Shown: positions 1 through 58,840 of the stretch, in pieces
Position numbering within the stretch: position 1 is the stretch's first letter
Layout: every line of letters starts with the position of its first letter
NCBI RefSeq assembly: GCF_000150275.1
Contig: NW_002060943.1
Span: 6,502,299 to 6,566,298 of the forward strand
Direction of reading: 5' to 3'
DNA length: 64,000 nt
Origin: Trichoplax adhaerens
Taxonomy: Eukaryota; Animalia; Placozoa
Position numbers and translations under genes: made by a program
Notes under the pieces: model-generated
Told to the model about the DNA's origin: nothing
Databases searched by the model: none
The model's input: the letters and a program-made list of their open reading frames with translations, nothing else

Positions 1-425
1 TTCAGTCGTAGAATGGACATAGTATAGTCGATGGTCGACAAACGTTCCTTGGTTACGGTGGTGAAGGAGCAAAGCAATTTGCTGCTAGGCTAGCAGGAAA
101 GAAGAATTTTGTCATCAAGTTGAAATTAGCTTGGCATCCAACGTTTTTAATCGCTTGCAACCCTTGCAATTGTCCCCTAATAGACTACTGTAGCTGCCAG
201 TCGTTCTCAAGACGATAGCAACCCACTTACACTAGTACTATCACTTTATGAACAAGGTGAGAGCAGTCATTTTACAGTCTGGTGCTCATCGACACGTTGT
301 TGCACACTTGCACATATTTTGTAGCAGCAAAATCATTTTACTAGGCAGACTAAAAGCGTGTTGCAATTGGTAACATTCATTCAAGCTCAAAATTGATTGA
401 TTATTAAGCTTCGATCAAGCACATC

Positions 426-3400
426 ATGTCTTCACCGGATAAAAATCAAGGTAAAAATGCCAATCGAAACTTGGTCGATAGTGACCAACTCAATCCGATG
501 AAAGAAGATCGATCGAAACAAAAAGTGGATAAAAATACCAAGATGGCTACTGAAGACAGTAAAAATAAGGCTATGGACAGGCATTCGCGTATGGGTAAAG
601 GGCGTGGAGAGCCGAAGAAAGGTCAGTTATTACCTATATCCATGATGATAGATAATGAGCAATGATATTGTTGTTAAAATAGAGGATGGATAACATTGCA
701 ATCGTGTTCCTATCTGTAAAGCCAGAATCTACATCTCTATACGGTAGAAATAGATGCCTAACTAGCATACAATGTAACATCTTGACGATCGGTTGTTTTA
801 ATCTTGGTCTACAACTATTTCGAATAGACCTACTCAAATCATTTTCCATCGATCAATGACCACTACTGCCTTAATCCATCCAAAATGGCAGAGACATACT
901 TCAACTCGTAAGGAAATGATCTCTAGACTGCTTAACTGCCATATTTTATCTTCTATACTACCTAATAATAACAGTATAAAATCGACGGCTATTACAGTCT
1001 ATGCCACAGCACAACCATCGCGAATTTGTCCCAGAAAGAGACTGTTTCAAATAGATTCTTAATTCATCCAAATCCCTATCCAATATTGCAAAGAAAATGA
1101 TCAATGCGTCTCAATCACAATTGTTCATTACATCGAATCAATAATACTAATCGAGCGATTTCGCTCGTTCCTATATGCCATAACAACAGTGTTATTGACA
1201 CAAGCTCTGCCAGTAAGAAAGGCCAGAACAAAATAATCAATGGCGTTCCTACGCTAGGAATGGAAAGCTCATTCCCTTTAAAAGAGGCTCCGACTTAATT
1301 AGTGGTGATTGTGATTACACCCCAATAATTGACTGTAGTTGTCCATTACACCTAATCGACAATACTAAGCTAACGATATCGTTAGTTCTGACAACAGCAC
1401 AGCCAGTAAGAAAGGCTAAGAACAAAAAAATCAACGGTATTCCCTGTGTTAGGAAAGGAAAGCTCATTCCCTATAAAAGGCTCCAACTTGAATGGTGATG
1501 GTTGTAAATACATCCCAATAATTGACTGTAGTTGTCCATTACACCTAATCAACCATTACTATGCTAACGATATCGCTAGTTCCCCATAGGCCATGACAAC
1601 AGCATTATGGACAAGAGCCAGGCCAGTAAGAAAGACCAAAAACAAAAAAAAATCAACGGTATACCTGTGGTAGGAAAGGAAAGCTCATTCCCTATAAAAG
1701 AGTCTCCAACTTGAATGGTGATGGTTGTTAATACATCCCAATAATTATATATAATTGACTGTAGTTGTCCATTACACCTAATCAACAATACTAAGCTAAC
1801 GATATCGCTAGTTCCCCCTAGGCCATGACAACATCATTATTAACACGAGCAAAGTCGGTAAGAAAGGCCAAAAACAAAAAAAATCAACGGTGAAGAGCAA
1901 GATAGATATCCTGCTAGCTTCCCAATTCGCACTTGATTGCAGTATAAAGCTGACCGATTTTTACGTTTGCAGCACTGTTCAAAGGCCCATATTTTACTGG
2001 TCAGTTTTTATTTACAATTTGTACTAGTCAATATCCACCGCTGCTTGACAAGTAGTAATAATAAATAAATTGAAATACCTAAACTGAGAACATCGATCAA
2101 GTCAATCTATCTTTTTTAACGCCAATATCAAACACCTTGTCCCATTTTCCTATATGTCAAGCTTAAAAGTAAGAAATGCAATCGAATCAACGAATGCATG
2201 GCTTATCAAGGAGCCGAATTGATCCGGCTCCAATTATGACTATAGCATGTTAAGTCTACATCTCACTGTGCTCTTGCTGCACTTCATTTTTGACCGCATT
2301 GCATCGTAGTAAATAATCCATAATTGTATATCGTGCGTTTAAAACGAATATTCTACACCCTTTAGTAGAATAACGACGGTGCTGCAATCTGCAAGCGTTG
2401 CATTGTAATATAGCTCATCGATTTTAACGTCTTGTACAATCGATGATCATATCACACAAAATGAGCAGTTAACGAAGGAGTCAATCTTACCTGTTTTACA
2501 CGCCAACCTAACATGTACTGTAAGCACTCATGCAGCCTCTTATAAAACCCAAATCGTGGCACAAATTAATTAATTATATATTGTACAAGTGTATGTATGC
2601 AATGGATTTTGTTATAAATTAGAGTCTATACAGTTACAGTGTACAAGCATAGCGACGATATGACTCTGATACTAATGTAGATGAGAGATACGGATTGTGT
2701 AGGCCAGCTAGATGAAATGAAATACATCAACGTTTTTATAATAGTTCTAGTTATAAATAAAGAGAACTCATCTCGTACACGTTGAAATTAACCTATGAAA
2801 TAGGGCTAATCTGCCTTCCAGTTTACCTTTACTTTATTCGATATGAATCTTATAATGTAACACTATTATGGGTAGTCTTAGAACTAATGTACGCATATTT
2901 ATGCAGTCTATGCAGTTAAAGGTAATTTTGTGGTAATCTGTTGCTATACCTATACACTATGGCACTAGAACATGCGTTTGTACTATTTTACGATATTATG
3001 ATAGGTGGTGGTGGTGGTAAAGGGACCTGGGGCAAAGCTGGTGAAGTTTACGAAGATGGCGATGGAGCGTTAGATGAAAATGATGTAAGTTATCCTTCTG
3101 GTGATGAAGTAAAATTATTCCAAAATGTTACGTATCTATTTAGTACCAGTTTTATTATTACAGTATGCATTGACAGCGTAAACTTTGAAAGGCTCTTTGG
3201 AATTTTGCCTTGCTATAGAAAAAGAATTTTTAACATAACGCATTAATTATTAATTTTAAGGATTAGAAGTAGGCTAGCCGTAACTTATTCCATTTTTTGT
3301 CTAGGAATAAGTCTCATGACTTTCAACGTGCGTACTTAGGCCAGATATTATTAAGAAAATAAAAGAATATACGGAATATCTGTTTACAACAGCAAATAGT

Positions 3401-4213
3401 TATTCTTAAAGTATCCTTGATTTTATTTTTGGAGTGTTATTGCTACCATGAATGGTGGTATCATAAAGATTCAGTACCTAGAGAGATCTTAAATCATAGA
3501 ATACCGATCGTGATTTAAAATGGTATTCAACAAATGGAAGTAAAATTATATTCATGATGTGCTTATCTTGACCATATTAATTAGTTGACTGCTAGCTACC
3601 TGTTATGTCTTGTCTTGTTAAAAGGAATGATTATAACGTATATTAGATTAATATATTAATACCCGTATATACTATAATGACCCAAGATGAAATATTATAA
3701 AGGATCTGGCGTATGATACAATTCAATGAACTTGTGCTGTATTGACTATGTCAACTGTGATGGTGATAGCAATTAAAATTTATAATTCTGATTTAGTGCA
3801 GTGCTGAATTGATTGATAATTAAAGTTGTGAAATCATAAACCAACAACGCTATAACAATTTATTATGCTTTACGGATCAATTATACCCAAATCCATTGAT
3901 CTTATCAATATTTTTCATTCGCCCATTTAAACTGTTTAGGTTTGTATCGCCATACCATTATTATTAGCAAGACTATCAGTAAATTTACTGTAGGCAAGCT
4001 ATAGGCGCAAGAAAGATCATCGTATTCTTATACTGTTGTATTTACACATAAATGTCAGCATCAAACCATCCATAACCTACTGAATGACTTTTCTAAGAAT
4101 AAAACTAGCGGAGGGCGTTATTTTATTGTATGCCTTATGAAATGTCCACTTTTCCTCCAATCAATTAATAGGAAGAAAATGAAAGGTGTATATCTGCAAC
4201 GATTAAACTATAA
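426..4213 (+). CDS. PDCD4: PDCD4-like protein, N-terminal region only (predicted ~113 aa, 3 coding exons: 426-621, 3005-3108, 4172-4213); no MA3 domains found
   Basis: Exon 1 ends ...DRHSRMGKGRGEPKKG with a phase-1 GTCAGT donor at 622. It splices to the ATAG acceptor at 3004, giving GGGKGTWGKAGEVYEDGDGALDENDVSYPSGDE. The joined motif matches the PDCD4 signature DRRSRSGKGRGLPKKGGAGGKGVWG. A pyrimidine-preceded acceptor at 4171 gives EENERCISATIKL*, resembling PDCD4 ENCVYETVVL. An alternative in-frame donor (GTAAGT) lies at 3085. Exon 3 is the least certain part. Confidence 0.72.
1180..1890. repeat. Tandem repeat of ~195-235 bp units (3 full + 1 partial) in the first coding intron of the PDCD4-like gene
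   Basis: gccagtaagaaag..aacaaaa..atcaa..ggaaagctcattccc..ataattgactgtagttgtccattacacctaatc..gctaacgatatcg recurs at about 1209, 1402, 1622 and partially at 1855. Confidence 0.9.
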
Positions 4214-6642
4214 TTATATACTATTAACTAAGCAGATTCATGTGGAAAATTTTATTAATTTCGATCATCATCTCTAAACCAGCAAGAATTTTACCTGTAT
4301 ACCTAGAGGGTAAGATCTGTCAATTCTGCATCTAGTTTTGTAATTGTAAGTACTAGACTTGTCAGTAAAAATACGATCGATATTTATCGCTAAGCAGTTA
4401 AGGTGTCTCGTTGAACATTTTATTGCACGCCAATATACTGTAGTAACAGTTAAAAAATAATTACATATCGCCTCGACTAAATGGAGAATCCATTATTAAC
4501 GCTTTATTCAATGCAAAGTTGGATAATTTAGTTTATTGTTACCTTCGTGTTACTTAAGTAAAATTTAATATTACACCTGCTCTCATCCCTAAAACCATGT
4601 GATTACCATGATTATATTATATTTAGCCTTTAAAGCGTGTCAGCTAGATGCTTTAGAAAGAAATTGGGCGTCAAAATCAAATTAATTTTAACAAGTAGAG
4701 AGAACAAATAACGTGACTCAGTAGAAAAATTTCATATTTATGCCAAAATCATTTAATGAATAGTGATATCATTTATCACTTTATTATATAATTTGTATCT
4801 ATCTACGATTTCATTAATACTCCTAAAACAATAAAAAGCAATAATATCAAGATAAGTATAGATTGATTTACAGGAGTAATTTTATACGTTTAAATATATT
4901 GTACAATTAATTAATCAGTCACGTACAAATATCACTTTGAGATAAGATTGAAGAAATAAATTCTCTTTGCTTGTGTGTCTTCATTTGAGTAATTCTACAC
5001 AATCATTTGTTTTTATCATTTTACACAGCTCAGCTATTATTTTATATATTAACATAGAAAGATATTTATATACTTTAAATACAGTTGATGAGTAAACGCA
5101 AAATAGAATTAAGAGAAAACAATATAACGTCAATAAAAGAAAATCTGAATCATCGCTGTCACAAATTTATCATTGCTCATGTCTCCTGCGCCTATAAATT
5201 ACCTTGTTGATCGCAATTGATTTTATTAATAATTAAATCCATGGATAATCATCCCCAAAACAGTTTATTAAATCATGAAAATTTTCCAATTTATTTCAGA
5301 GAGTAAGTTTTAACGACTTTGTATAATTTTATATAGTAACTGACAGTAATTAATCGATGATAAACAGTCAAATGATTCAGTTAATTTCTATTTAATGTAT
5401 ATTTCATAATATTGTCTCTATACGCTAGTACTTACAATAAAACAACTACACTATCACCTTGAACAACTACAGCTAATAAAATATCTTAACTGCTTTGTTA
5501 TAATATAAACTTTAAACTGTATGCGTGTATCTCGTCAGAAAGATTGATTATAAGCTACATTTAAGTTTGTAGTTAATGATATGCCTGTATGAAGTAATAA
5601 ATCGCTTGCTTGATTAGTGAATAAATTGCATTCACATCTATGAAAGTAGAGGAAGTAGCAATACGTAATTTCAAGGCTTAAGTAAGATTTTAATGAGAAA
5701 TTTTATAACAATATCATTATATTTCAGTATATAACATAATCAACATCAACAAAGGACTGCTATTACGTATTTAATAGTTGATAGAAGTAGCTATAAATCA
5801 GAATTGATAGTCTTTGCCTAGTGATTTACTAATTAATGAATTTATTGATTTGATACATTATCTGATTTTGTATCTATTCTGAAATGGATTATAACTTTAG
5901 TTTTATAATCGATACAATTTACGTTTTAAACAGTACGCACCACTTTAAATATGTCTGAAAATATTCTAATTGCCTTCTCTTGATATATTCAATCCTAGCT
6001 TAATGTTCAACATAACATTAAAATTCATCTATGTTCATCAGATCAGGAAGGGTAGCAAAATATCAGGTCCAATATATTCAATAGTACGATATCATTTAGC
6101 CACTTTCTTATTAACTTTCAAATTAAGAGTGATTCGTCATTTAACAATAACGCGCACTTTAATATCGTGACAAAAAAAATTTTAAAATAATAAATTGACA
6201 TATCTTATTGTTACTAAACCAGGAGCGTAATAAATTGATGTACATCTCTTAATCATACTATATTCTTTTATTTTAATAAATAATAATTGCTATCAATGAT
6301 GCTTAAAGCTCCATTCCCATTGCTTTGATGGCCTGTGTTCGTTTAAAAAGACTATAGATAGAAAAAATAACTAAAAACAAATAAACTGGAACGTAATGCA
6401 CGAATTAAATATACTGCATCTGTGTTATTAATATGACAATGAAAAACTAAACTTTTCACAGTTAAAATAAAAGATTTGCATCTTGTTAGCTGAAAGTTAA
6501 AAATTGCTTCACTATTAAATGTGTTTTATTTCCTGATTTGAAGAAGAGTTTAATTTTAAATTACGCAATAACACATGCATAATTATTATTTTGGGATAAT
6601 ATTATTATAAATGATTAGAAGTTATCGATTAATTATAAGCTC

Positions 6643-27890: not shown

Positions 27891-28574
27891 TCATTAAATA
27901 TTCTCAAACTAAGTCAACACTTATTGATTACTCCAAAAATGGCAATGGGAGGAAATTGCCTCTACCGTAGTATAGGAAATAGATTCTATCAGTACACCAC
28001 CCAGGAAGTTGCAGTATTGACATGACTACCATAAGTATAGATCAAGATCGTACTAGCACATGTAAACAACATTTAGCAAATATCAACAACATCATACTTG
28101 ACATACCTCATTTTGAATTCTACATTAGCAAAATTATCGCTTAGGATACTATTAATTTCAATCTTCAGCCCGTGTCAAGATTGACTATTTTTTCATATCA
28201 GTTCACTAAGCTACCAAAGTATTTTATCGTGTAAGTACAGATGTTGAACAAGGTTAAAAAGGTAACGACTATTGCCGTGTAGATTAAGAACCATGGCATT
28301 CCCTAACAGTGATCGTCATAGCTAAAGAGCAGCATTTGGCCGTAATTTTATTATAGACTGAAATTGCATATAACAGAAATAGCTCTAGAAATTATACTAG
28401 ATTCTCCATCCTATAGAAATACTGTATACAAGTATTTCGGGCTTTTTTTAATGATTGGCATGACTAGTATAATATTGATTTTAATACTGTTGTTTAATTT
28501 TAACTATGATTCTATAAATATATGCATTTATATTCAATTTTATATCATTTTCTTCCATTTTAAATAGTGTAAAA

Positions 28575-31500
28575 ATGTCTGTTGGCCAGCGTAAAGACAG
28601 CAAAGTACATGTCTATATTAGCAATGTGGATAAGCAAGACGCTACATTGGAGGAATTGCTAGCAATGTGCTTAAATTCATTCGGTATGTAAGCATGATGG
28701 ATATTTGTTATAGTCGTAGTAAACTTTAATAACCGATCGACAGGTTGATTACTTGAACTGACGTATACAGAATATTTCTATCTCCCTGGAGAATGAAAAC
28801 CACCCTTAGATAAATACCAAATTTTCATCTTTGATACCTTAATGAGGATATTTAGTAACAGTTAAGGGAGATATTGTGAAGAGCTTACTGACAGATATTT
28901 CTTGGCAATAATCGAATTATTCCGTTGGAAATGTCAATTTATGAGTGTTACAAATCTTCTTTGTAACAAGAAACCGGGTCTTAAACACTATCTTCACTAG
29001 TACTTGTGTCCCCAACTAACTTAGGGACCTATCGTAGTTGAACTAACTCTCAGCTACACATAAAAAACTACTATTGAGTAATAGGTTTAAATACTTTACT
29101 TTATTTTCGTTAACCTTAGTCGCAAAATGTACTAAAGAAAAACGAAAGAATATTCTTAGCAATAATAGTCAAAAAATCCTGCAAATGACTAACTGGAACT
29201 GAGAAGCTAAGCTAGTGCTCCGCTTTTTATAGTCTCGCCGATGGTACACTTGTGAATATTTTTGAAATAGCGGCTTACGCAGTACAGTATACATATCCTA
29301 GTATAGCAATTAAAGCCTCAAGGCTCTGCAAAGCAATTGATCTTATACTTAAATAGCAAATATCTATCACAAGCGTCTATTGCTTGTAAAATCAGTTTAG
29401 TGTAGCATAGTCATGTATTATAGTCCATCTGTAGATTCTTCAACAAGAAAACTCAAATCAATTGATCAAGAGGTTTACAAAAAGTGAAATAGTTTAAATT
29501 ATTCGGGTGTTGTTCATTTCTTCTTTGTCCTAGATGTGGGTATGATTAATCTAAACGGCTGTATGGAATAATGGATATAATGTTATAGTTCATTTGGAGG
29601 TTGTTGAAGAAGGTAACTAAAATCGATTGATCGAGAGGTATACAAATGGGTAAAGTGGAAGGATTTATATTATTTTAACGGTATTCGTTTCTTCTTTCTC
29701 CTTGATATGGGCATGATTAATTTCAAAGGGGCGCATAATAACAGATTTCTAGAATAATATAGTCCATCTGTAGGCTGTTAAAGAAGGTAAGTAGAATTGA
29801 TCGATCGAGAGCTATGCAAAAAGTTGAAGTAGAAGAGTTTGGATTATTTGGACGATATTCATTTCTTCATTTTCTTATTAGTAGTTGGTACTACTCATAG
29901 GAAAACAAGTTAACTATACGAAATAGTAGTGACTCTACTTTAGGTCAGATCAATCTGTAATATCGATTTATTACTTAGAATTCGTAAATTCCTACTTTCA
30001 ATAACCATCTTATAATCTCTATTGGTTAAATAGACCAAGAAAGAGTTTCTAATTTAGACAACATCAGTTTTGGATGATAATTACTATGTACGAGTATATA
30101 ATAGAAAAAGTAATATCGTATTTATTTCTAAATCGAGGCAGTATTTACTACATATTCGATAGAAACTTAACAGGAGAGAATACCCAGAACTAGCTACTAT
30201 TTTTCACATTAATAAAGCTAGCTTTGTGTAGAAAGACGTTATCGTCAAGGTTTACCCTGAAATCTAATTTCCGATATTCCATTTCAATACAAATAGGACG
30301 CCATGATTCAATTATATTTCATACGTATGTTTATTTATGTAGCCACATTCATCTCCATCGATGTGTCTTGATGGAAATGATGATGGATAATTAACAGTTC
30401 ACTGTTAGCATTGAAACTTAACCTTATAAACGACAAAAATTCATCTTATTTTTAAGCTAGATTAATCAATTGCCTGTTATATTAGTATTATCGTCATAGC
30501 TAGCAAGCACTCGATGACGGCTACATCCTACATGATCGATAATTGTACGTTTTATGATTTTAAGGCGTTGAATAAGATGAAGATATTAATTGTTTCAAAG
30601 TTGCTGTTTTATTTTCTTTTTGGTCACCTAGTGATAAGATTACCTATAGATCATAACCACCTACTGTAGTACAACAATTAAAATATTGTAGAATAGATCT
30701 CATCAACCAATATAACCCTATGAACCCTAAACGTAATTTGCGTCTAATAATATGACTTCCTCTTCGTTATGTCATGCCTATTCTATGCAAATTGGCTATT
30801 GATCAATCCTTTCACTTTTTCCATTTTATAATTTTTCTCTGAATGGATATAAAAAGGTAAATAGACAAAAATAAAGGCTAATGCAAACATTATGTTCTTT
30901 AAATTTTTAATTTTCAACCTTTATTTTGACATTAACTTGTCGCTATTAATTGCTGCCAGTAATGATAGATACCAACGGAAAGATATTAGTACAGTAGCAT
31001 CATAACACGAAATATATTATGTCAAATGAACATAAATTCTTTTGTCCATTAATATATTTTTCTAACTTAAATACCAATGATGCCAAAATAGCTTGTCTCA
31101 TGATATTAGGTTCGAGATTGATGAGTGCGTTTTAATAGTCCATTCTTTCACTTTGGAACTTTCAGAGCAAAATCATTGAATACAAAGCAGAATTTGGGCT
31201 GCTAATAACGTGGTGGGATCACCTATTTTAAGAATAATTAAGCTAAAAGTTGAATTTTTATTGCTGGGCTAATATTTCTCATTACTTATACATTTAAAAC
31301 TTTATTTTTTATTGTTGTACTTGAAGAGGACGTGCTATCTTTTCATATCACATTACCGTTTAACTTGCGCCAGAGGGATAAAACTTTGATCATTTCCGCT
31401 CAGCCAAGTGTTATTATGAACGCATATATAGCCAGTTATCTCTTATTGCACTTACCCATTACCGTATAATTTCTTACACTATTTTCCATTTTGGGAGCTA

Positions 31501-34500: not shown

Positions 34501-37500
34501 ATCAGAAAAAATTAAGTTCTCAAAGTTCTGTCATTAGACTAATGAATACTAATCTGAATAAACTATAATGAATATCTTATTTTCTGCTTTTCCTAATCTC
34601 CTAATCACCACAACTCCTCTAGTTCTGCCTATCAATCTATCGCCAGCGGAGCAGTTTATACGACTGATGATTTTTTTCAATGTAATGGTGAAATGGGCAA
34701 TTTTTCATTGGATTTTGCTACCATGACTGCTGAATCCATTGCTAACCATCTAACTTATATCGAATCCACCACTTTCGCTGATGTACAGGTAATTGAAAAG
34801 AATCAACTATCGTCGGTAGTCTTTGGCGATCATGAGATAGCAAATATTAAGTCAACGCACATCAGAAAGGATGGATGTTACTTCCATCAGAATATCATTA
34901 CCTAGTGATTCTATGATAGATTATACTCATCTTCTTGTTGTCTATAGATTCAAGAGATTCGACAATTTGCCAAAAAAGGAAAGGTGACAGAAACAACTCC
35001 ACAATTAGGTTCATCAATCGGAATCTTTAATGGTGTTGTGGCATGGATACAAGGCATGGTGTTAAGTGGTATTACAGCAGAAGATAGAGCTAAGATCGTG
35101 ACTAAATTCATCGAAGTAGGCAAGGTAAATCTATGGAAGCCAATTAGAAATCTGCTGCCTGATGAATTTTTAAATGTGATACTTTATGGGCTAAATATTT
35201 ATAGTTTTCTGCTGATTTGAGTTGGATTCGTGTATCTAAAATGACTATTATTAGAATTTTGGGGATACTAAAGAATTCGATTCTAAATTCTAAGTAGATA
35301 CCGATGAAACAAATATCAGATTGCTCTTATATAAGAAGCTAAATGTATTTTCCCCTTACTAACGCCTTTTCATCCATTTTTTTATAAACTGCTTGCCTCG
35401 CTACTATGGATAATAGTATCTAAAAGCTATCAATAACTTCGAAACACTAATGGCTGTTGTTACCGGTTTAAGTCATACATCTTTAGCAAGACTCAATCAA
35501 ACGTTTGCATTACTTTCCAATGAATCTAAAATGGTAAAATATTATTTCATGAAATGTTTTACCTCTATTTCAGAATGTTTATGTTTTAAGTATAAATGGA
35601 AAAATATTATTTCTATTTCTTACCCAATGTAGGCTCTTGCAGGAATGATTGATTTGCTAACCGTTACCGATAACGCTAGTCGATATCGTAAAGCTGTAGC
35701 TGAATGCAATTGCTACAAGATGCCAATGTTGTAAGTACTCATGTACTACCTTTTTTAATTTGGAGTTAGATAGATATCCCGATCTTTCATCATTACTATA
35801 TTATGGAGTGCTCAATTTTATAAGTTGCAATGCAGTTCTATTCATTGATTTTATACCGATGTAATATGCATATTTTGTGGAATCAATGTTATAGTAGTGC
35901 TAATTTAGATAATTTATATCTCTTCTTGATTTCTATCAATAATGCCTCGTCTATACTTTTATAACTCAATTCATCCTTAATCCAACATCATCCACTAGAG
36001 GTAATCATCATACATATATAGCGATGATTAGATTGTTAAGTTCATTTTCGATTTAAAAATAGCCAATAGCTAACATAAATCCTCTCTTTTAAAATGTAAT
36101 TTTTCTAGCAATCCACTTGAAAGATTTAGTCTCATTAGATGCTGTTATGCCTGACTATACTCGCGATCAAAAGATTAATTATCAAAAGCTCTTACAATTA
36201 TCATGTATTTTGTCTGAATTAACGAATGGGCAAAAATATTTTCCTGATATCAAAGTCAATGCTGAAACAATTGATATGATGAAGGTATGAAGAAATACGT
36301 AATTTAATTTGATATCAATATTAAGCATAAAATGTTGAGCTACAGGTAATTCATAGGAGTTTGAAAGAATATGTGAATTCAATAAAAGTATTTACCGTAA
36401 ATTCAATAGAAATGTTCGAAGTTAAATACTTTCTCATGAAAGTTTACAGGATATATGAATTTAACAAAAATATTCAACGTAAACACTAAACAGTTGTATT
36501 AATACGGTATTCCTAATCAGGGTAAAGCTAATATGTGGTCATCCTGTCTCTATCTTGTCCTTTTCTCATTTAGTTATCGCTGGAACCTCGATTTTCTGAA
36601 AATGAAATTTATGAATTATCATTAGCCAGAGAACCTCGAGCTCCAAAAGCAGCCGGATCTATAGTAAGTCCACTTATTAACAGGAATAAAATGGGCACAA
36701 TTTATAATTTATTTTATAAATCAGAGCAAAGTTGATTCATATTTATCATAGAAGTTAGCCATATTTTGACCGAATTTGTTTAATTTGTATACGCTATCCT
36801 CTTACACTTTAAAAACGTTATTCCAGAAAAAAACCAATGAGAATGTTTTTGGAGCATGGGCTTCCACTATTACAAGTAATATTAGCCCAGATATTGTCAA
36901 AAAGCACATCCAAGCTATGGTTAAGGTACGTATTGTACATGTTATCCATACTAATATAAATCAGATAATAAGTTAAAACTAGGAATACCCGCAATTTTAA
37001 TTAGACAGTGAAACAGAGTAGATTACAACTTATCATAGACATTTAATAAAAGTATTTACACCAAAATATTTCCTTAAGGCTGTTTTCAAGTGTTATGATC
37101 GTAATAAAGATGGAGTGCTCTCTATGGAAGAATTTGCTGCTATTGCTAGTAATTTTCCATTTCTTGATGCGTTTGGGGTCATTGATACTGATGAGTAAGT
37201 CTTTTTTTAATTTCTCAGCTGCTACGCTAACTGATGATTTATCAAAAGAGAGAAATAAAGTCAAGTAAACTTAACTAAATCTTGCAATTATATCCTGCAA
37301 CTGTAATAGCGATGGCCATATTACTAAAGAAGAATTATTGACCTACTTCGAACGGGCAAATTTTCAAGCTTTACGTCAAGGATTTGTCCATGAATTTCAA
37401 GAAACAACCTATTTATCTCTAACTACTTGTTATCATTGTGCACGCCTTGTAAGTTACAACCTAACGATAAACAAAATATAAAAAACTATCGCAAATAATT

Positions 37501-38494
37501 GACTGATGAACTATTTTGATTGCTTGCTTAAGCTTTGGGGCGTTATTAAACAAGGATACAAGTGCAAAGGTTTGTAAAGTAAAACGATTATGCTTCTACC
37601 AGAAACAACACAGAACTGACTTGATGATAGCATTACTAATGACTAATTGATCTATCTAGGCTGTGGAATAAATTGCCATAAACAGTGCAAAGATCTAGTG
37701 GTAGCAGAATGTCGGCCACGAAATAATCGGGATAACAGTAAGTTCAAGGCCAATTTCTAGAGCCTCCTGCAATATTTGGCATTTTCCATTTTATTTCTGG
37801 CTTTTTCATTGATAATAACAGCAAAAGAAATAGATGACTGTATCTTAACTTAATGCTATTTTCGAAATATTTAGATGATCAGATGCCTACCAGAACACAT
37901 TCTCTGATTAAGAAAAAAGTGAAAAAAGATCAAAAGCGCCATACTATGGCCGCTTTACCCGGTGTTCGCGATTGCGAACAATTTCGAAAAAGTGCCAGTA
38001 TGACTATTCAAAATCCCGACGATGATGAGAGGCACCGATCAAGAACGATGCCGGGTAGATTCATTAATGATCTTGTACAGAGAAAAAACAGCAGCGAAAA
38101 GCTATTACCAGCTCAAGAGAAATTTGGTAGTAATACATCAATTAGTAGTCGTAATGGTCGCGCATCTATTGCTGTAACGGAAGAGGTGCAAAAATATCTA
38201 CGTATCAGATTTCAAGATAAATTCGACAAGATTCTACGCCAACGCTAGTTTAACATCGATCAAATTTTTGCTTTGTTTTTTGCTTTTCTCTTCAATTTTT
38301 TTATATTTTTATACATAATTCAGATGTATAACCAATTATGGGAAGAGAAAACACAGTTAGAGGAGGAATGCCTAGAGGCCAAAGCTACAATAAAAGCGTT
38401 ACATGAACAACTTGACAATGTTCGTCGGATTACTTGTATGTATCTGTTAGAACAAATGAATCAAATCAACTTGCAAAGGGATTCGTCTATTTGA
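28575..38494 (+). CDS. RASGRP: Ras guanyl-releasing protein (RasGRP/CalDAG-GEF family), ~17 coding exons
   Basis: First coding exon 28575-28683 (MSVGQ...ATLEELLAMCLNSF) splices in phase 1 to 33803 (DENG...FLQAFFVCHPWFINSQDL). Downstream exons give RYWIENFP (REM), FNGVVAWIQGMVLS/DRAKIVTKFIEV, NNFETLMAVVTGLSHTSLARL and HLKDLV (CDC25 RasGEF), SLEPRFSENEIYELSLAREPR, EF-hands DRNKDGVLSMEE and DTDDDGHITKEE, C1 [39 protein letters not shown], and a C-terminal coiled coil ending QRDSSI* at 38494. The introns checked are GT-AG. Confidence 0.93.
29410..29870. repeat. Degenerate tandem repeat (~170 bp, ~3 units) in RasGRP intron
   Basis: atagt.cat.tg.ag at ~29420, 29585, 29759; gaaggtaa, gatcgaga and tc.tttcttc repeated. 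Confidence 0.7.
31615..33050. repeat. Tandem repeat, four ~310-325 bp units plus a partial copy, in RasGRP intron
   Basis: gagctat.agtatt.tattc at ~31788, 32099, 32418, 32741 (partial at 33034); ttaatcatc.att.at and tagactaa occur in each unit. Confidence 0.9.
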
Positions 38495-49167: not shown

Positions 49168-51998
49168 TTAAATTACATTCGTTTCATTCAATGGTGAATT
49201 CTTTAGAATTCTATCAAATCCGAGTCTCGTTAGGTCTATGGAAGTAAATTTTCCATCTATAATTAATTCGCTAATGGCACGTCCAGCGGCAGGGCTTTGT
49301 TGAATACCATGGCCACTAAATCCGTTGATAAAGTAGAAATTTTGCAATACAGGATGAGCACCAATAATAGCGTTCTGGTCTACAGTGTTGTAATCGTAGA
49401 AACCACCCCAACCACCAACAATCTAAGCATGAATTTGGAAAGTGAACAAACGAAAATAGCTTTTCAAACTTCTTAAAGAATTACTCTAATTTTCGTACAA
49501 TTTATTAAATCATATAGTTATCTACGGTATTTACGTATGCAAGAGTCGAACCTTAAGAGATTCAAATGCTGGTACGCGTTGAGCAAGGAATTCCCACAGT
49601 TCATCGTAGAAATACTCGAAATCGCAGTCCAAATTATCGCATTTCGGCTCTTGCTCCTAACATCAAAGTAAAAAGTAAGTATTACAGAAATACTATTTGA
49701 GTTTAAGCTGCCCATTTATACTGTACAAAATTATTTATAATTTAGTGTAAAAACTATTATCTGGAATTCAATGCCGAGCACACGCTCATTAAAATTAGAA
49801 TGCCGTATGTAAGTAAAGTTCTGTGCCGGCACATTACAGCTAGTCAACGTGATAGATTAAAATACTGTCGATAACTTACAGCGCTTGGACTACGTCCACA
49901 TATATAGTAGCCAGAACATTCACGCCGGAAATATGTGCCAGATGAATCAACAGTAACTGCGGGCGTTGACTTTGGTCCAGTAGGACAATCATAAACGTAC
50001 ACGTACCTTTTGGCTGGCTGAACTGGCAAAGATACAGACATTAATCCATCTTTCTCACTTCCGATACCAGCCATTGAAGCAATGTGGCCAGCCCATGGGC
50101 CACAAGCATTAACTAAGTAACGACATTTTATTGATTCTTTGTGATTGTCTTCGTTCATTTTCACCTATCATGTTCATGTGAATATTTAAAATTTTAAGAT
50201 TAGAAAAAGCAGATATATTTTTCTCAAATCAAAGCTCAATAAAAAGTATGCAACACCAGTACATAAAGCAGTGGATAAATAAATTTAAATATACGAGCAT
50301 ATCAATTATGCGTACTACAGTTTGAAAACAGCAAAGGATGTCACGTAAACATTCAATCACCTCGATTCCTGCAATTTCCTTCTGGTTTCGCATGATATCA
50401 ACAACTTCTCCATTCAAATATCGAACTGACATTGCCACAACTTTTTTTCTCATGCATTGTAAAAATGAATAGGGATCAAAAGAACCTTCATTTTCGAGAC
50501 CTAGATACGAAACAAAAGGGCAAATTTAATTCTATTATGCTTATAGATATTTGACTATTTATTCGACAAGTTTACTCCGTAGTGGCAATCGATTATATAT
50601 TTTCATAGTTAGTTTTGCATGCAGGATTAACAACTTAAAGGAAGGCTCGTAAATGAAAGTTTATTACCTAGAGAAGCAATAGCAATACCATCCGTATTTA
50701 TCCATGGAAATATTTGCGATAATTCCTTTTTGGATAATAGTTTGACTGCAGCTCCCATGGAACTGTTGATACCGAAATATGAATAGTAGATCATCGTTAA
50801 GTTATAATTAAAAGAAACACAATTGTAATTATACGTACATAAGAAAATTGTGAACAATTAAAAGTGTTGAAAAATTTCAATAATTATATTGGCTTAGTAT
50901 CTAATATGACTCGCTTGGAGTATTCTACAAATTGGATAATAAAATTTCTAAATAAGAAACTGATTCGAATGTTTCTCTTAATTGTAATTTCGTTCAATAA
51001 AACATATAGTTGGACATGAACTAACTGCTCAACAATTAAAATGAAAGTTGATTTGACTAATCTTGTATACTACATGGCCAATTTCACGTATAAGCCTATT
51101 ATGGAATTATGATAGAAAATCACTTTACCGTTGAACATCATAGTTTTCACGCAATAATTTCTCTCGATTCTCATCAACGAGATAGACGTAAGGGGCGTTA
51201 CGAAATTGGATATCAAGATCATCATCGTCTTCCACTTTCAGATATTGATTACATTTCGAAATAAAATCGTAACCAAATTTGGACATCATTATATTTTCAG
51301 GAACGGAAAATTGCTGGCGTATCGAGCCACAAGAAAGTGGTGTAGAGGCCTTTTCATACTATTACAAGATAGCATTTAAAATTGGAGAGTCAGACTTGTC
51401 AATACAACATTTGGATCGCGTGACGATTGCACTTACATAAATCATGCACTAAATGAACTGATTATAATAGTTCGTGTTCATCGATCATAAAGTACTTGCA
51501 TGCAGTAAGAAATTGAGAAACCGTATTGGTTAAGAGAAACTTCTCAATTCACTTTGCCTCACGTTAAACTTGGTAACTTCAATCCCTGTACTCGTATAAG
51601 TCTAGTAGCACAGTTATAAAAAAATGCTATCAATTGCTAACTACTTAGTGTAAGCCATGAACGGTTATCGATACTTTACGAACATTGGGAGTAATTAAGT
51701 TACGGTCCATCCCGGGAATCGATCATACCCCGGAACATTTAGACATGTCTAATCTACAGTAGATGATGATTCATCGATACTATCATATATGTACCTTATT
51801 ATCTCTCTCGATAACACATATCTTGGTTGGATCGATACGCTTGGCTAAAAAGTATGCTGTTGTCAAGCCCATAATACCACCACCAGCGATGACAACATCG
51901 AATTGGTCAGAAGGTAAAGATGACAGATGCTTTCCCCATCTTGCCAACATCGACTTGTTTAAGGATTTTATGGATGAATGTAGCAGACGACTAGCCAT
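49168..51998 (-). CDS. FOXRED1: FAD-dependent oxidoreductase domain-containing protein 1 (complex I assembly factor), 7 exons
   Basis: Basic/Ser-rich mitochondrial presequence-like N-terminus; DVVIAGGGIMG dinucleotide-binding motif; ASTPLSCGSIRQQFSVPENI; FPWINTDGI; GLENEGSFDP; VNACGPWA; LPVQPAKRYVY; YDYNTVDQNAIIGAHP; GFSGHGIQQSPAAGRAISELI; ends NETNVI*. Confidence 0.94.
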
Positions 51999-54900
51999 TT
52001 TGCAGGATGATTTGGATAGCTAATGGATTTTGGACGATATCATTTCACAAAGAAATGACAAGTAGAATGCAGAATACGGTAGATCAGTTCGAATTTATCT
52101 TAGCAATTAATGAACCAATTAATTAATCAGCCCAGCAACAGTTGCAATTAGCAATTTCCGAGCTAAAAAGCAGCTGGGTGTTATGACTTTTGCGATGGAT
52201 TGCCCTTGCCACCCACCACTTAATCGTCCAATGTCTAGTGTCCAACCTCTAATACAAATTGATATAATTTCCAGTTCCCGTTGAGCTAGGTTATAATTCA
52301 TTAACAGTTGGCAACGATATCGTATGGCAACAGTAGAGATGTTTACACTATTACGATTATATAAATAGACTATAATAAATATACTGTATCATGTAGGCAA
52401 CGCTAATGCTGAAGTGTGAGGAGGTCCAAAATCCAAATCGTACTCACTCGTATGTTACATCGTAAACATGACTTTTGTCCCATACAAAATCATTGCAAAA
52501 GAATACAAGCGCCATATTCGACCTACTTGTACTGATGGTTTTGCAATATGACGAAATTATACTTGTAATGGCATCTAATAAAATGCCCATAATTATTACA
52601 AATGGAGACATAAAATTGCTTTTAGGACATAAGTACATATTGAAATTATGCTTGGATGATAAAATGAAGTTGGAGAGAATCAGCGTTGGAGGGTTAACCG
52701 GCCATTAGCCAGTAGAGACGTGCGATTGAAGTTGGAAAGTGCTGTTGTAGAAGAAAAATATTTTCAATCACAAGAGGGTAGAATATATCAAATTCCTCTC
52801 ATTGTAGATTTATACTATGCAAAGTTTAAGTCTAGAACCTGCGAAAAATTACTTTATAGTAGTCTCTACCATTCGTATACTAACGGCTTTTCACCTTAAA
52901 CGACTATTTGGAACTTTCTTAATTATAATTAGCGATCCAGCCGTAGGCGGTAGTTGCCTTATTTGACGGCCCAACCATATTCTATCTACACTGGTAACAT
53001 TAACAGCGACTGCGGCAATTCTCAATAGAAAATGGCGGGCCCTATTACCATCTAAAGAAATAGGAAAATAAATTAATTAATGCTATACAGTCAATAAATT
53101 AAGTTAAGTTAATCTTATTACAAGTAATAAATAGCACGACCCGGTAAATATGGCATACAGACAACAAAATATACCGTAAGTAAGAGATACAAACGGTTAA
53201 ATTTAATTTATGGCAGGTCTGGCGCAAAATTCTAGTCTTCAAGTGATTGTTTAGCCTGGATAAGAGTAGAAAATCCTGACGAAAAGAAAAGGCTAGAAAT
53301 TTTGCCACTGCGATTAATTTTAATTTTAATTCCTTTACCCTTTATAACAAATTGTAGCTTTGCATCATGACTATTTGATGCCTGTAACTACCCGTTCACT
53401 TTCTTAGTATTAAACAGCATTGGGCAATGAAACTTAATTAAAAAGTATAAAGTTGAACTTGTGGACTATTTCCTTTTTTTTGCTTAAAGAATGGAATTTA
53501 GGTAGTTACATATTAATTAGAATTAAAATTATTAAATTAAAAATGATTAATTCTGAGGACAACAAACATGCTGTACGACGCATCTATCAATAATTAATAT
53601 AATTAATTTACATTTCCTATTTTAATCATATTTAGCGATCCTTGATTAAAATAGCTGTTTTTCGTATTGCCTTAGCTATGTTTAAGGTATAATTGTATGC
53701 AATTAAAAGTATGTTATAGTTCTTACCCTAGCAGTCAAAATTGATTGTCGTCGAAGTAATTGTGTATGAAGGAAAATTTTTCTTCACTTTAGCAATATTA
53801 TGAATAATCGTTTACTTATAATATTAAGACACAACTCTTCTGGATATTGACGTAATACAGCAAGCTGAGCAGTAATTATGAATGAGCAGACGTAATCAAA
53901 TCAGCTAAAAATATCGCCTAAAACAGATCCAGTTACTAGTCTAGGTAACCTGATCGTTACTCACTAACGCACTCTTCCAGGCTTTTAACAGAAATGCCAA
54001 ATATTTCTTGATAGGCTATAGAGTCAACGTATATAATATACACGTAGCGCTAAAGAATCATTTTACGACCCCATTAAATCGCATTTACGCATTCACGTTA
54101 TCTGCATAGCAAGGGTGCAACTCGTTAAACTTGGAATCAATTTTAACTCTCCTTGCGGCCTTCCTATGCTTTTAAGTTGTATAAAGCAATTATATAATTA
54201 TTGGTGAGTTCCATCTTTACAAATTTACAAATTGCTAACAGCAAAGCTAGCTTTAATTAATAAACGTTTTGCTAGGAAATATCTCATAAAATACTGAATA
54301 GATCTACTCGCTTCAAGACTTTTCTGAGTTATAAGTTATATCATTCAAATACCTACATTAACCATACAAAACCAATTTAAACTATTATTATTAATACCTT
54401 CAACAACGCCAGCTTTGATTTATAAGTGTTTTTATCACATGACAGTCTTTTATAGGTACTTATGCTGTAATATACGGTATTAAGCATAGTTATTGATAGG
54501 ACCTTCTTTAGTAGCATATTAATCAGTTATTATACTGTAACGACAGTAACTATCATCTAATGGCTAGATTAGTAAGGATTGTTTAAAATGATAATATACA
54601 ACGAGTAACTGGAATAATGGCCACAATATAGCAGAGAAAGTAACACGCACAGAAGCATTGTCATAACATCAAAGCCTTGGAAAGTCCATAGGATTAGCTC
54701 TTACATTAACGGTCATAAGTGATTGGCTTCTTTATTTTTACATAGAAATGAATTTTATAATCTCTTGTTCTGCGACAATAATGCTGAATTTGACAACCGG
54801 TCAGGCACATCCAATTTACTACCATTGTTACTAACGATAACGAAAGAGATTTTAACCTAAACAAATCTTTACCTTCAACAATTCATTGCACACATTTGCT

Positions 54901-55457: not shown

Positions 55458-58400
55458 TTATATGAAATTGGCAGATGTAGCTGTTTGGCCTAAATCTTTT
55501 TTAGCACTTGATATCTCAGGGCTACAGTCATGCTCGTAAGGTTTGGAATGATCTTTCTTATAAAATATCCAACTAGCAAAGAAGCAAATAGTAGAAGCTA
55601 TCTTGATAAATAAACTAATGCCACTGATATAGTACATTATAGCTTTGTTATCATAGACTAAACATACAGATACTTTATTACTACAGTTACTATCCCAAAA
55701 TACACATGCTTGATCAATAAATGCTCCTACTAGTATCGGAGCCGGTAGGCTGGCAACTAATCTTAAGAATACCCACGAGAAACCAACAGCAAAGGACCGC
55801 TGACTTTCCGAGACACTTCTAAAATTATTAATAAAATAGTAAAATTAATGGTTTGCTCAAGCTATCATTATCTCGTCTTTTATATCATATCTACGTTAAT
55901 ATACGAGTAAATTAAATTGATAGATTCTATGTATTGAGAGTAACTTTTAAATCTTGAAAATTAACGTATTAATAAGCCTGCGACAATGTCTAAAGTAAAA
56001 TTGTAAAGATTAATAGCTCTGTAGCCACGGAGAACTTGTAGCGTATTTCAATATTAGCAACTGAAAAGGCAAGTCTCAACTTCTTTCAGGAATAATACAT
56101 GAAAAGAAATTCTTGCCTCATCATTGCTTCTGTTATTGGAACTATTTTAGCACTCATGATGGTTAAGGAAATTGTTAAACCAACGAGAAATGGAATCAAT
56201 TCTTGGCATGATTTACGGCATAATCCTCCTAGAGCATCATATGGCCGTAGTGGAATTGTTGTTTTATTGACGCAACTGCAGTCTAGGTACATCTGAAATT
56301 AAGTTAAATATCATTAGCAAAATTCAGAGTAAAGAAATTAATTTTGATTTGATACTCACATTAGTATATTATTCTGAATAAGTAACTGTGATAATTAAAA
56401 TCTGCTTATAGGTGTTATAAATTTTTTATCGAAGGTAGCGATGAAACTACATATTGATTTCTTCTTAAGATATGCAAGTATTCTAGCATTATAAAACACC
56501 AATACAAAATCTGATCATGTTATCTTCGGATAGCAATACAGGAATATAAAATACTATGATGAAGGTCTTTGAATCTACGAAATAAATTTCTTGCGTAGAA
56601 TACTGCTGTAATAATATTGTCTATTAAACTTCATATTAATTTTGATAGAATACTCACATTAGTATAATATTCTGGATTAAAGGCACTGCTTGAGCAGCCA
56701 GCATGGCATGGAGAATAAAAACTAACTCCATCTATACCACATATAGGATTATATTTAACGCCATTACACATGCAGTTTGAATTGCAAGAGGACATCAAAT
56801 TAGGACTAGGGAGCCTAGTGATGTTATAAATTTGAAACTTTTAATCATTTGAGTGTGCTATCAATCAGAAAATAACATTATATCTTTTAGGCTAGATTAT
56901 GCCTTGTGAATGACAATCGCAATTTCATGAGAGTAAAATTTTGCAATTCAAAAATTGTAGATTCCTTTAGATAATTATACAATAATTGTAGTGCAAGTAT
57001 ATTTTATACTCAATATAGAAACATGAGACGATATTAATGCGGCAATGTAATTGTAGTTTCTCAAAAATTTTGCATGGGCATTATCAAAATTAATTGTAAT
57101 TAGACATCATTTCGTAATTCTTGATTTGTAAAATCTTTCCTGTTAACATCATCTTAACTATCCAATGCTTGATATTAAATGAAGTAGTGTAGTTTGATTC
57201 AAACTTACGTTGTTGGTGTGGATAGAGGATTATCAGGATAATTACGGTTAACTCCAGCAAATGGAAGATCACCGCAGTAGACAAAATAAGTTAAAACAAC
57301 TATGGCATCAGCTATACTAATGATCCAAGTCAATTTGATGGCGGCGACGCCATTCATCTTGAGAAACTTCATGATTATTCCACTCTAGTCCAATCAGAAA
57401 TATACCTTCGGTTATTAATGGTAATAATGCTGTATAAAATATATCTTAAATAAGCTACAAGGTACTAAAAAGTTTTTGCAAATATGATCGTATCGAACTA
57501 TCATCAATAAAACTAGCCTATCAGATTACCAATATAATGCCAGCTGTACCGCTAGCTAAAGCAATATAACCAGTAGTGAGGCTTGCTTGATAAGCCGGCA
57601 TATAAAATCGTGTTTCAATAATTTTGACTAAAAAGTAGCCAAATCCAGATACTAATATATACTCGAATGAATTGCCTGCTACTATAAGCATGTATGGGAC
57701 GTTGGTGACTAATGCTTTAATTGCTTTGAAGATATTTTTAGTCTTGATCCCATATTCATGATCGATCCGAGCATTTTTACCGGCCATATCTTTACGTAAT
57801 GCTTTATATTTTTCAAATCCTGGTAAATACTTCGGAAATGCAAATAGTGGTATAGAAATCAGCACTAAGATAATTCCCATCGATAAGAAACAAATCCACC
57901 AAGCACCAATCCACCTAGGATCAAAAGGTGTCATACCTTGCACAGTAGATAAATAGAGATTTTAATTTCAGACATCGAATAATACTTTATTGGAGAGAAA
58001 TAAAAGTACTAGAGATAAAATTGAAGGATTTTAAAAGGAGTAAAAGTATTTTAATTATTTGATACCTATAGGAGCTGACTTAGGAGTATCAACATAAATT
58101 TGTAATATCGTAGCAGCAATAATAAAGCCCAATGAAGGACCTATAGCAGTTACGCTCGACATAATCGCAAGATACATGGCTGATGACAGCGGATGGACAT
58201 TTTCATCAATGTAAGCATAGCCAATATTCCACAATAAGTTATAGCCAGCACCCATGATCAATTGACTGATGATAAAGATTGGATAAAACCGACGCGAAGA
58301 AGTAGGAACACCTGCATTAATATTGCAAACTTGATCGGCAAAGGAGTCGGGTTTATCGATACATAAATCAGTATAATTACTGGTAGTAATAATAGGTTGA

Positions 58401-58840
58401 TATGGTCCGACAAAGAAATGGGGTAATGCAAAAATGATCGAGCCGATACCAACTACCAATGCTCCAATGCTTAGAAATCTTCCTTTATGCCTTAAGCCTG
58501 CGTAATAACTAGCAATAAAACCGATAATTGCTGCAGAAACCTCTGAACATGCAGGCAATGCTCCAACTTCGGCACTTGTTAGTATAAATCTCTTTTCCAG
58601 CGAGCTCACTACAGAGGCAGTAAATCCAGATACTAATACTTCAGCAAAAAATCCATAAAGAAAGATGAATAAAAGTAACCACCATCGATGGTTACAACAT
58701 TGAAGCCATGTTGGATGGAATGAGCCCCATCCAAAGTATCCATGTTTTATAACTTTAATTGATTCCTCGAAATGTAATATATCATCATTATCATCATCTG
58801 CTTGTTGGTGGTCATTTTGGGCGCCATTACTATTAGACAT
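55458..58840 (-). CDS. SLCO4A1: Organic anion transporting polypeptide (SLCO/OATP, most like the SLCO4 group), 6 coding exons
   Basis: GWGSFHPTWLQ, SSLEKRF, FALPHF, AYIDENV, OATP signature DPRWIGAWW, Kazal-like CNSNCMC..YNPICGIDGVSFYSPCHAGC, QRSFAVG, LPAPILVGAFIDQACVFW; ends ANFI*. Family is secure; one-to-one orthology to SLCO4A1 is not. Confidence 0.9.

Follow-up and report, generated by a model that had tools for sequence, protein, structure and literature searches.

A truncated PDCD4 paralogue kept under selection in Placozoa, probably encoding a small ribosome-binding protein

Does the start of a 64,000-nucleotide stretch of the Trichoplax adhaerens genome (contig NW_002060943.1, positions 6,502,299 to 6,566,298 of the forward strand; this whole stretch is called the window below) hold a working gene, or what is left of a partial duplication of PDCD4? 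The initial annotation, made from the letters of the DNA, had seen there a retained PDCD4 derivative devoid of MA3 domains and little more than the segment that binds the 40S ribosomal subunit's mRNA channel, with a partial-duplication pseudogene as the alternative. Our analysis bears out the first of these: the locus, which we call mini-PDCD4, stands beside a full PDCD4 gene elsewhere in the genome, and in three lineages or more, strong purifying selection has maintained this stump. It probably encodes a working small ribosome-binding protein.

The gene was delimited by translation and by comparison with an orthologous contig of 5 kb (L008), which carries exon 2 as well. Three in-frame exons had been proposed for the locus; exon 1 (426-621) and an exon 2 starting at 3005 hold, and the third, at 4172-4213, has to be given up, having no L008 counterpart and a poor acceptor. 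The resulting structure reads as follows.

426..621, plus strand, exon 1: start of the coding sequence, 65 codons and 1 base; a lineage-specific N-terminus, the invariant block LNPMKEDRSKQ.VDKNTKM, then DRHSRMGKGRGEPKK at the end (translation and orthologue comparison)
622..3004, plus strand, intron 1: phase 1, 2383 nt (2374 nt in L008), donor G/GTCAGT, acceptor atgatag/GT
3005..3084, plus strand, exon 2: begins GGGGGKGTWGKAGEVYEDGDGALDEND in translation, with the Trp that docks on uS3 in human, then an acidic tail
3085..3304, plus strand, intron 2: phase 0, 220 nt (223 nt in L008), donor GTAAGT at 3085
3305..3310, plus strand, start of exon 3: GAA TAA (Glu, stop), with GAG TAA at the same place in L008
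3311..3400, plus strand, probable 3' untranslated region: AATAAA at 3358-3363 (poly(A) signal scan), end inferred

Exons 1 and 2 are both local peaks of G+C (43-45%) amid AT-rich DNA, in a genome of 105.6 Mb and 1414 contigs with ~30% G+C. Over its first 2.6 kb, the window shares 99.1% identity with contig NOWV01000191.1 of Trichoplax sp. H2.

A separate full-length PDCD4 gene, for which the initial annotation had pointed to a genome search, is present on another contig (C1407:2704346-2708757; L006:4347-8758), where it was reached via a genome-wide six-frame scan for MA3. This gene is compact, has its own start and its own 40S-channel motif (KHSRIGKGRGLPKK, then GGAGGKGTWGKPG), and its exons match, in pieces, two separate MA3 domains and a typical PDCD4 C-terminus. 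Exons 1 and 2 of the window are paralogous to its first two exons: when every plus-strand frame of the C1407 gene was compared with the whole window by tblastn, exon 1 and exon 2 were each matched at E 3e-8, and exon 1 matches its counterpart by BLASTP at E 3e-9. Each of the two exons occurs in exactly two copies genome-wide, in the window and in C1407 PDCD4, and both introns share their position and phase between the two genes, the phase-1 intron falling inside the Gly codon after PKK and the phase-0 intron after the acidic stretch. Mini-PDCD4 thus shares common descent with PDCD4. Later PDCD4 exons did not rise above noise anywhere in the 64 kb window in the same tblastn search, the orthologous contigs yielded matches to exons 1 and 2 alone, and the MA3 scan (PF02847) gave no match in the window, which extends the initial annotation's statement that no MA3-coding exon follows. 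Since the C1407 gene is complete, each exon has two copies and no later exons lie in the window, the window copy is a truncated paralogue rather than a misassembled piece of the real PDCD4.

Compared with full-length PDCD4 (human and C1407), the mini gene has homologous first two exons, the same intron positions and phases, and a 40S-channel motif followed by an acidic stretch, but it lacks the MA3 domains, ends at about human residue 140, has its own conserved N-terminal 50 residues and carries Glu instead of Leu before PKK. The absence of a DSGxxS (beta-TrCP) degron from the N-terminus, stated earlier, was confirmed by a regular-expression scan, which found neither this degron nor an S6K site in the mini gene. 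C1407 PDCD4 is also without DSGxxS and has only a basic-Ser site, KTKRIS, of a kind that the mini protein lacks. Because the full Trichoplax protein lacks the degron as well, its absence from the mini gene says little, and DSGxxS as a family-defining trait may be limited to vertebrates.

A word search with exon 1 returned three proteins. In TrispH2_009813 (Trichoplax sp. H2) the exon is identical, with 100% protein identity; the others, P0002 (77% identity; Logan assemblies of SRR30664516/7) and P0003 (66%; metagenome assemblies at ENA, including one of a marine-biofilm sample), are genomic read-throughs into intron 1. Given their level of identity, the same exon-intron structure and the habitat, we take P0002 and P0003 to come from other placozoan lineages. 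An exhaustive phmmer search with exon 1 recovered two placozoan clusters only and no longer isoform, with a motif too short for phmmer to decide on similar stumps in other phyla, and the JGI metagenomes yielded no relatives. Placozoan-looking contigs (L008 and L009) occur in the marine-biofilm metagenome assemblies ERZ23499115 and ERZ27263980 at ENA (sample SAMN08714533, PMC6355793); assemblies of this type may be a place to look for uncultured placozoan lineages.

Comparison with these relatives, which the initial annotation had named as a check, gave ratios of replacement to silent substitution rates (dN/dS, Nei-Gojobori) of 0.080 and 0.084 in exon 1; exon 2 stands at 0.066, and silent divergences (dS) are 1.1-1.4. 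Silent changes exceed replacement changes with a Fisher test p = 1e-14, and the gene is under purifying selection. Changes in exon 2 relative to L008 fall mostly on third positions, along with one in-frame 6-nt indel, and indels among the orthologues stay in frame in general. The ATG, with an in-frame stop upstream of it, is kept in three lineages, and the sequence before it is not; identity to L008 has fallen to 38% in the body of intron 2. The block LNPMKEDRSKQ.VDKNTKM, invariant across the three lineages, has no assigned function.

How the gene ends can be read from the same comparison. The second junction had been placed at 3108 (or 3084)/4172; the donor at 3084 is backed by L008, and the acceptor moves from 4172 to 3305. 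Trichoplax and L008 agree in all ten bases (10/10) of GTAAGTTATC, which come directly after ...DEND, and the L008 frame read through past exon 2 stops after 8 codons, so we place the donor at 3084/3085. The acceptor at 3304/3305 is conserved (ttttttgtctag/G, against acttttatag/G in L008), and identity to L008 rises from 38% in intron 2 to 57-70% after it, being 57% over 3311..3400. In each lineage, phase-0 splicing 3084/3305 then adds a single Glu before the stop; the predicted product has ~93 amino acids (aa) in Trichoplax, shorter than the ~113 aa first proposed, and 90 in L008. Alternative donors found in Trichoplax only, at 3108/3109 (GTAAAA, phase 0) and 3131/3132 (GTATCT, phase 2), would give 101 and 125 aa; MA3 is absent from all three variants. 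The first 9 nt of exon 3 match the start of C1407 PDCD4 exon 3 (GAA TAT GTT) at 7/9, a score reached by only 0.46% of the AG sites in 3.1-28 kb, and the stop of the mini gene sits where C1407 PDCD4 has a Tyr codon. This suggests, though no more than that, that a Tyr codon in ancestral exon 3 had turned into the stop by the time the lineages parted; past the first 9 nt, the post-stop sequence matches C1407 exon 3 no better than shuffled sequence.

Other ends were considered and set aside. A public MAKER model of Trichoplax sp. H2, TrispH2_006424 (P0004), uses the same acceptor, 3304/3305, with the donor 3131/3132; as a conserved frame its tail was rejected, since the L008 frame has to be shifted by 2 nt to follow it and meets a stop ahead of the donor. 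The exon at 4172-4213 (EENERCISATIKL) shows no local rise in G+C, and its acceptor, caattaatag, is weak. A candidate exon at 3703-3729 (DLAYDTIQ-stop, with a 39-codon frame in L008) was demoted to a conserved downstream block after the acceptor at 3305 emerged. Downstream of the stop lie two blocks of 70-75% identity, 3426-3485 and 3682-3719 (L008:3146-3205 and 3409-3446), not consistently open in one frame, which could be 3' untranslated or regulatory sequence. The downstream DNA of L008 had no match when searched against the Trichoplax genome.

For so compact a genome, intron 1 is unusually long, and its length is nearly equal in two deeply diverged lineages (2383 versus 2374 nt), whose sequences can no longer be aligned (window 622-3004 versus L008:349-2722). 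It carries a tandem repeat at 1209-1891 (a unit of ~193-232 bp, ~3.5 copies, 84-86% match), found in Trichoplax sp. H2 too, and an Rfam scan of window positions 1-6000, intron 1 included, matched no family.

No model in the reference annotation covers the mini gene. In H2, the assembly is interrupted within intron 1, between the end of NOWV01000191.1 (L012) and the start of NOWV01000060.1 (L013), and for this reason the H2 gene is split into two partial and mutually inconsistent models, TrispH2_009813 and TrispH2_006424, the former implying a non-canonical GG-AG intron (window 621-827). The H2 annotation is an evidence-based MAKER annotation drawing on transcripts and proteins (PMC6057997), and models on both halves of the gene give only an indirect hint that it may be expressed. 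In current placozoan annotations the mini gene is thus either missing or mis-modelled, and we found no literature on a placozoan PDCD4 paralogue.

What could so short a protein do? Residues 44-65, encoded by exon 1, align to human PDCD4 94-115, in agreement with the intact channel motif read here by the initial annotation. Exon 2 alone found no match in a PDB search and was mapped onto human residues via the full paralogue, whose exon 2 aligns to human PDCD4 116-146 (E 9e-5). In human PDCD4, residues 99-145 occupy the 40S mRNA entry channel and decoding site, where R102 and R110 contact decoding bases, K114/K115 contact helix 18 and W124 sits on uS3; mutating K114/K115 or V123/W124 abolishes binding (PMC11310195; the docking role of the Trp is also described in PMC13419753). 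By sequence comparison, the mini protein keeps equivalents of R102, R110, K114/K115 and W124 in all lineages, and GKGTWG is invariant between Trichoplax and L008, so that a 40S channel-binding motif of the human 99-145 type appears to be present.

We therefore propose the following scenario. PDCD4 was duplicated and one copy truncated, probably early, leaving a predicted protein of ~93 residues made of its own 50-residue N-terminal part, the equivalent of human PDCD4 ~101-140, which covers most of the 99-145 channel stretch, and the terminal Glu and stop. Because the MA3 domains are absent, this protein presumably does not bind eIF4A in the PDCD4 manner. On 40S subunits or 80S ribosomes free of initiation factors, its Arg/Lys-Gly motif and Trp would settle into the mRNA channel and onto uS3, making it a stand-alone plug of the channel like SERBP1/Stm1 and not an inhibitor of initiation.

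Several known systems help to judge this scenario. The closest is Pdcd4-NTD, a laboratory fragment of the human protein (residues 1-156) that likewise combines a disordered N-terminus with the channel segment and has no MA3; it lowers mRNA affinity 4-fold and binds the 40S subunit no less tightly than full PDCD4 does (Ki 21 nM versus 23 nM) (PMC11310195). That fragment is an artificial construct, whereas mini-PDCD4 occurs in nature and selection has retained it. The published human fragment data argue against a simple initiation blocker and point rather to a protein that binds idle ribosomes or competes with PDCD4. SERBP1, HABP4 and Stm1 are disordered hibernation factors, associated with vacant 80S ribosomes under starvation, that run through the mRNA channel in idle ribosomes, with a conserved Trp docked on uS3, and the PDCD4 segment resembles them in sequence and structure (PMC11310195, PMC13419753). 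Their combination of a Trp with a basic, Gly-rich channel segment can be recognised in the sequence of the mini protein as well. The likeness does not extend to the family domain: a Pfam scan of both mini exons found no match to HABP4_PAI-RBP1 (PF04774), whose true match in the genome is on C1405, and the mini protein is not homologous over that domain, is much shorter, and is without the parts by which SERBP1/HABP4/Stm1 bridge to 60S and eEF2.

On balance we lean towards a real, placozoan-specific protein-coding gene, derived from an early-truncated PDCD4 duplicate, whose product serves as a stand-alone 40S/80S channel plug of the SERBP1/Stm1 kind. The narrower claim that this ~90 aa microprotein has a single structured role, the plugging of the mRNA channel in idle ribosomes, we advance tentatively, as something short of an even chance. 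Several observations weigh against the favoured reading. Neither the word searches, with length ranges (43-138 and 46-145 aa) that take in the 93-125 aa product, nor the exhaustive phmmer search found a spliced product or transcript; they returned only genomic read-through open reading frames and the two partial H2 models. Only two lineages were compared to define the third exon, and in the public model of H2 the donor is 3131/3132, not 3084/3085. On its own at 250 nM, the human fragment 1-156 leaves translation uninhibited, and its binding to the 43S complex is more than 100-fold weaker (PMC11310195). In the motif itself, Glu replaces the Leu of human and full Trichoplax PDCD4 (EPKK versus LPKK) in all three lineages, a substitution fixed in the mini clade, as is the invariant N-terminal block, and Thr-Trp stands in place of Val-Trp, in the mini copy as in full Trichoplax PDCD4. 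Lastly, a channel plug already exists in Trichoplax, since a SERBP1/HABP4-type gene is present (G000:C1405:2322410-2323306; L014, L015; PF04774, 25.7 bits).

The same gene and product could instead compete with full PDCD4 for the channel site and relieve eIF4A-dependent repression, as a natural dominant negative. The binding motif is common to the mini protein and the full paralogue, and the human N-terminal fragment displaces the full protein from 40S while not itself inhibiting translation (PMC11310195); the site, however, overlaps that of the SERBP1 homologue too, so competition would not be specific to PDCD4, and we regard this role as unlikely. Rather less credit goes to the idea that exons 1 and 2 are the 5' end of a longer gene, with later non-PDCD4 exons beyond 3.3 kb or a junction to a plus-strand gene near 28.5-38 kb. 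It is true that the 3' end is not fixed by a transcript, that the GTAAGT donor proves splicing only, and that weakly conserved blocks (3426-3485, 3682-3719) lie downstream. Yet a conserved acceptor follows 220/223 nt on, with an immediate Glu and stop in both lineages, no window of at least 40% G+C, the mark of exons here, occurs from 3.1 to 17.5 kb, the exhaustive search gave no longer protein containing exon 1, and the 3703 candidate has a frame of 8 codons in Trichoplax and of 39 in L008.

A functional small protein with its main role off the ribosome, in general RNA binding or in the nucleus via the basic conserved N-terminal block, seems to us slightly less probable again: that block is invariant and the Glu-for-Leu change may weaken channel binding, but the strictest conservation falls on the residues that in human PDCD4 contact 18S rRNA and uS3 (PMC11310195). 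Last comes the pseudogene with which we began, a decaying partial duplicate still open by chance, which has very little left in its favour and is close to refuted. Most of the parent gene is indeed missing, with no reference-annotation model and no transcript seen; against this, both exons are open in three lineages at dS >1 with dN/dS of 0.07-0.08, indels are in frame, the ATG, the two donors, the two acceptors and the stop are conserved, and the adjoining intron sequence is down to 38% identity. With such constraint on the coding sequence and on its start, splice junctions and end, the locus is not a pseudogene.

The rest of the window offered further observations. Some 24 kb (4000-28000) at 27-30% G+C hold no convincing exons, which is unusual for a gene-dense genome, and at ~17.8-18.5 kb, on the minus strand, similar short frames recur (...FYLRYHGRNNRD...), suggesting a local tandem repeat. 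On the plus strand, open reading frames at 28518-28688 and 34693-38494 resemble, by eye from their translations, the start and catalytic part of a Ras-GEF-type gene. On the minus strand, 49844-52023 and 57521-58840 contain, judged by eye from the list of open reading frames, exons with a GxGxxG start (VVIAGGGIMG...) of the kind that binds flavin adenine dinucleotide, and a gene resembling a multi-pass membrane transporter.

Whether the N-terminal segment of PDCD4 has a role of its own, such as SERBP1-like ribosome dormancy, or is a mere anchor for the eIF4A-inhibiting MA3 domains has been in question since the cryo-electron microscopy structures of 2024, and firm evidence for an independent role is lacking according to a review (PMC12785861). 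A gene that keeps only the channel segment under strong selection, with silent sites saturated, argues that this segment alone is useful, and mini-PDCD4 offers a small, tractable protein for testing the segment on its own. If our reading is true, this placozoan gene would be a natural experiment, in which the N-terminal segment of PDCD4 is selectable without eIF4A, in ribosome dormancy or protection.

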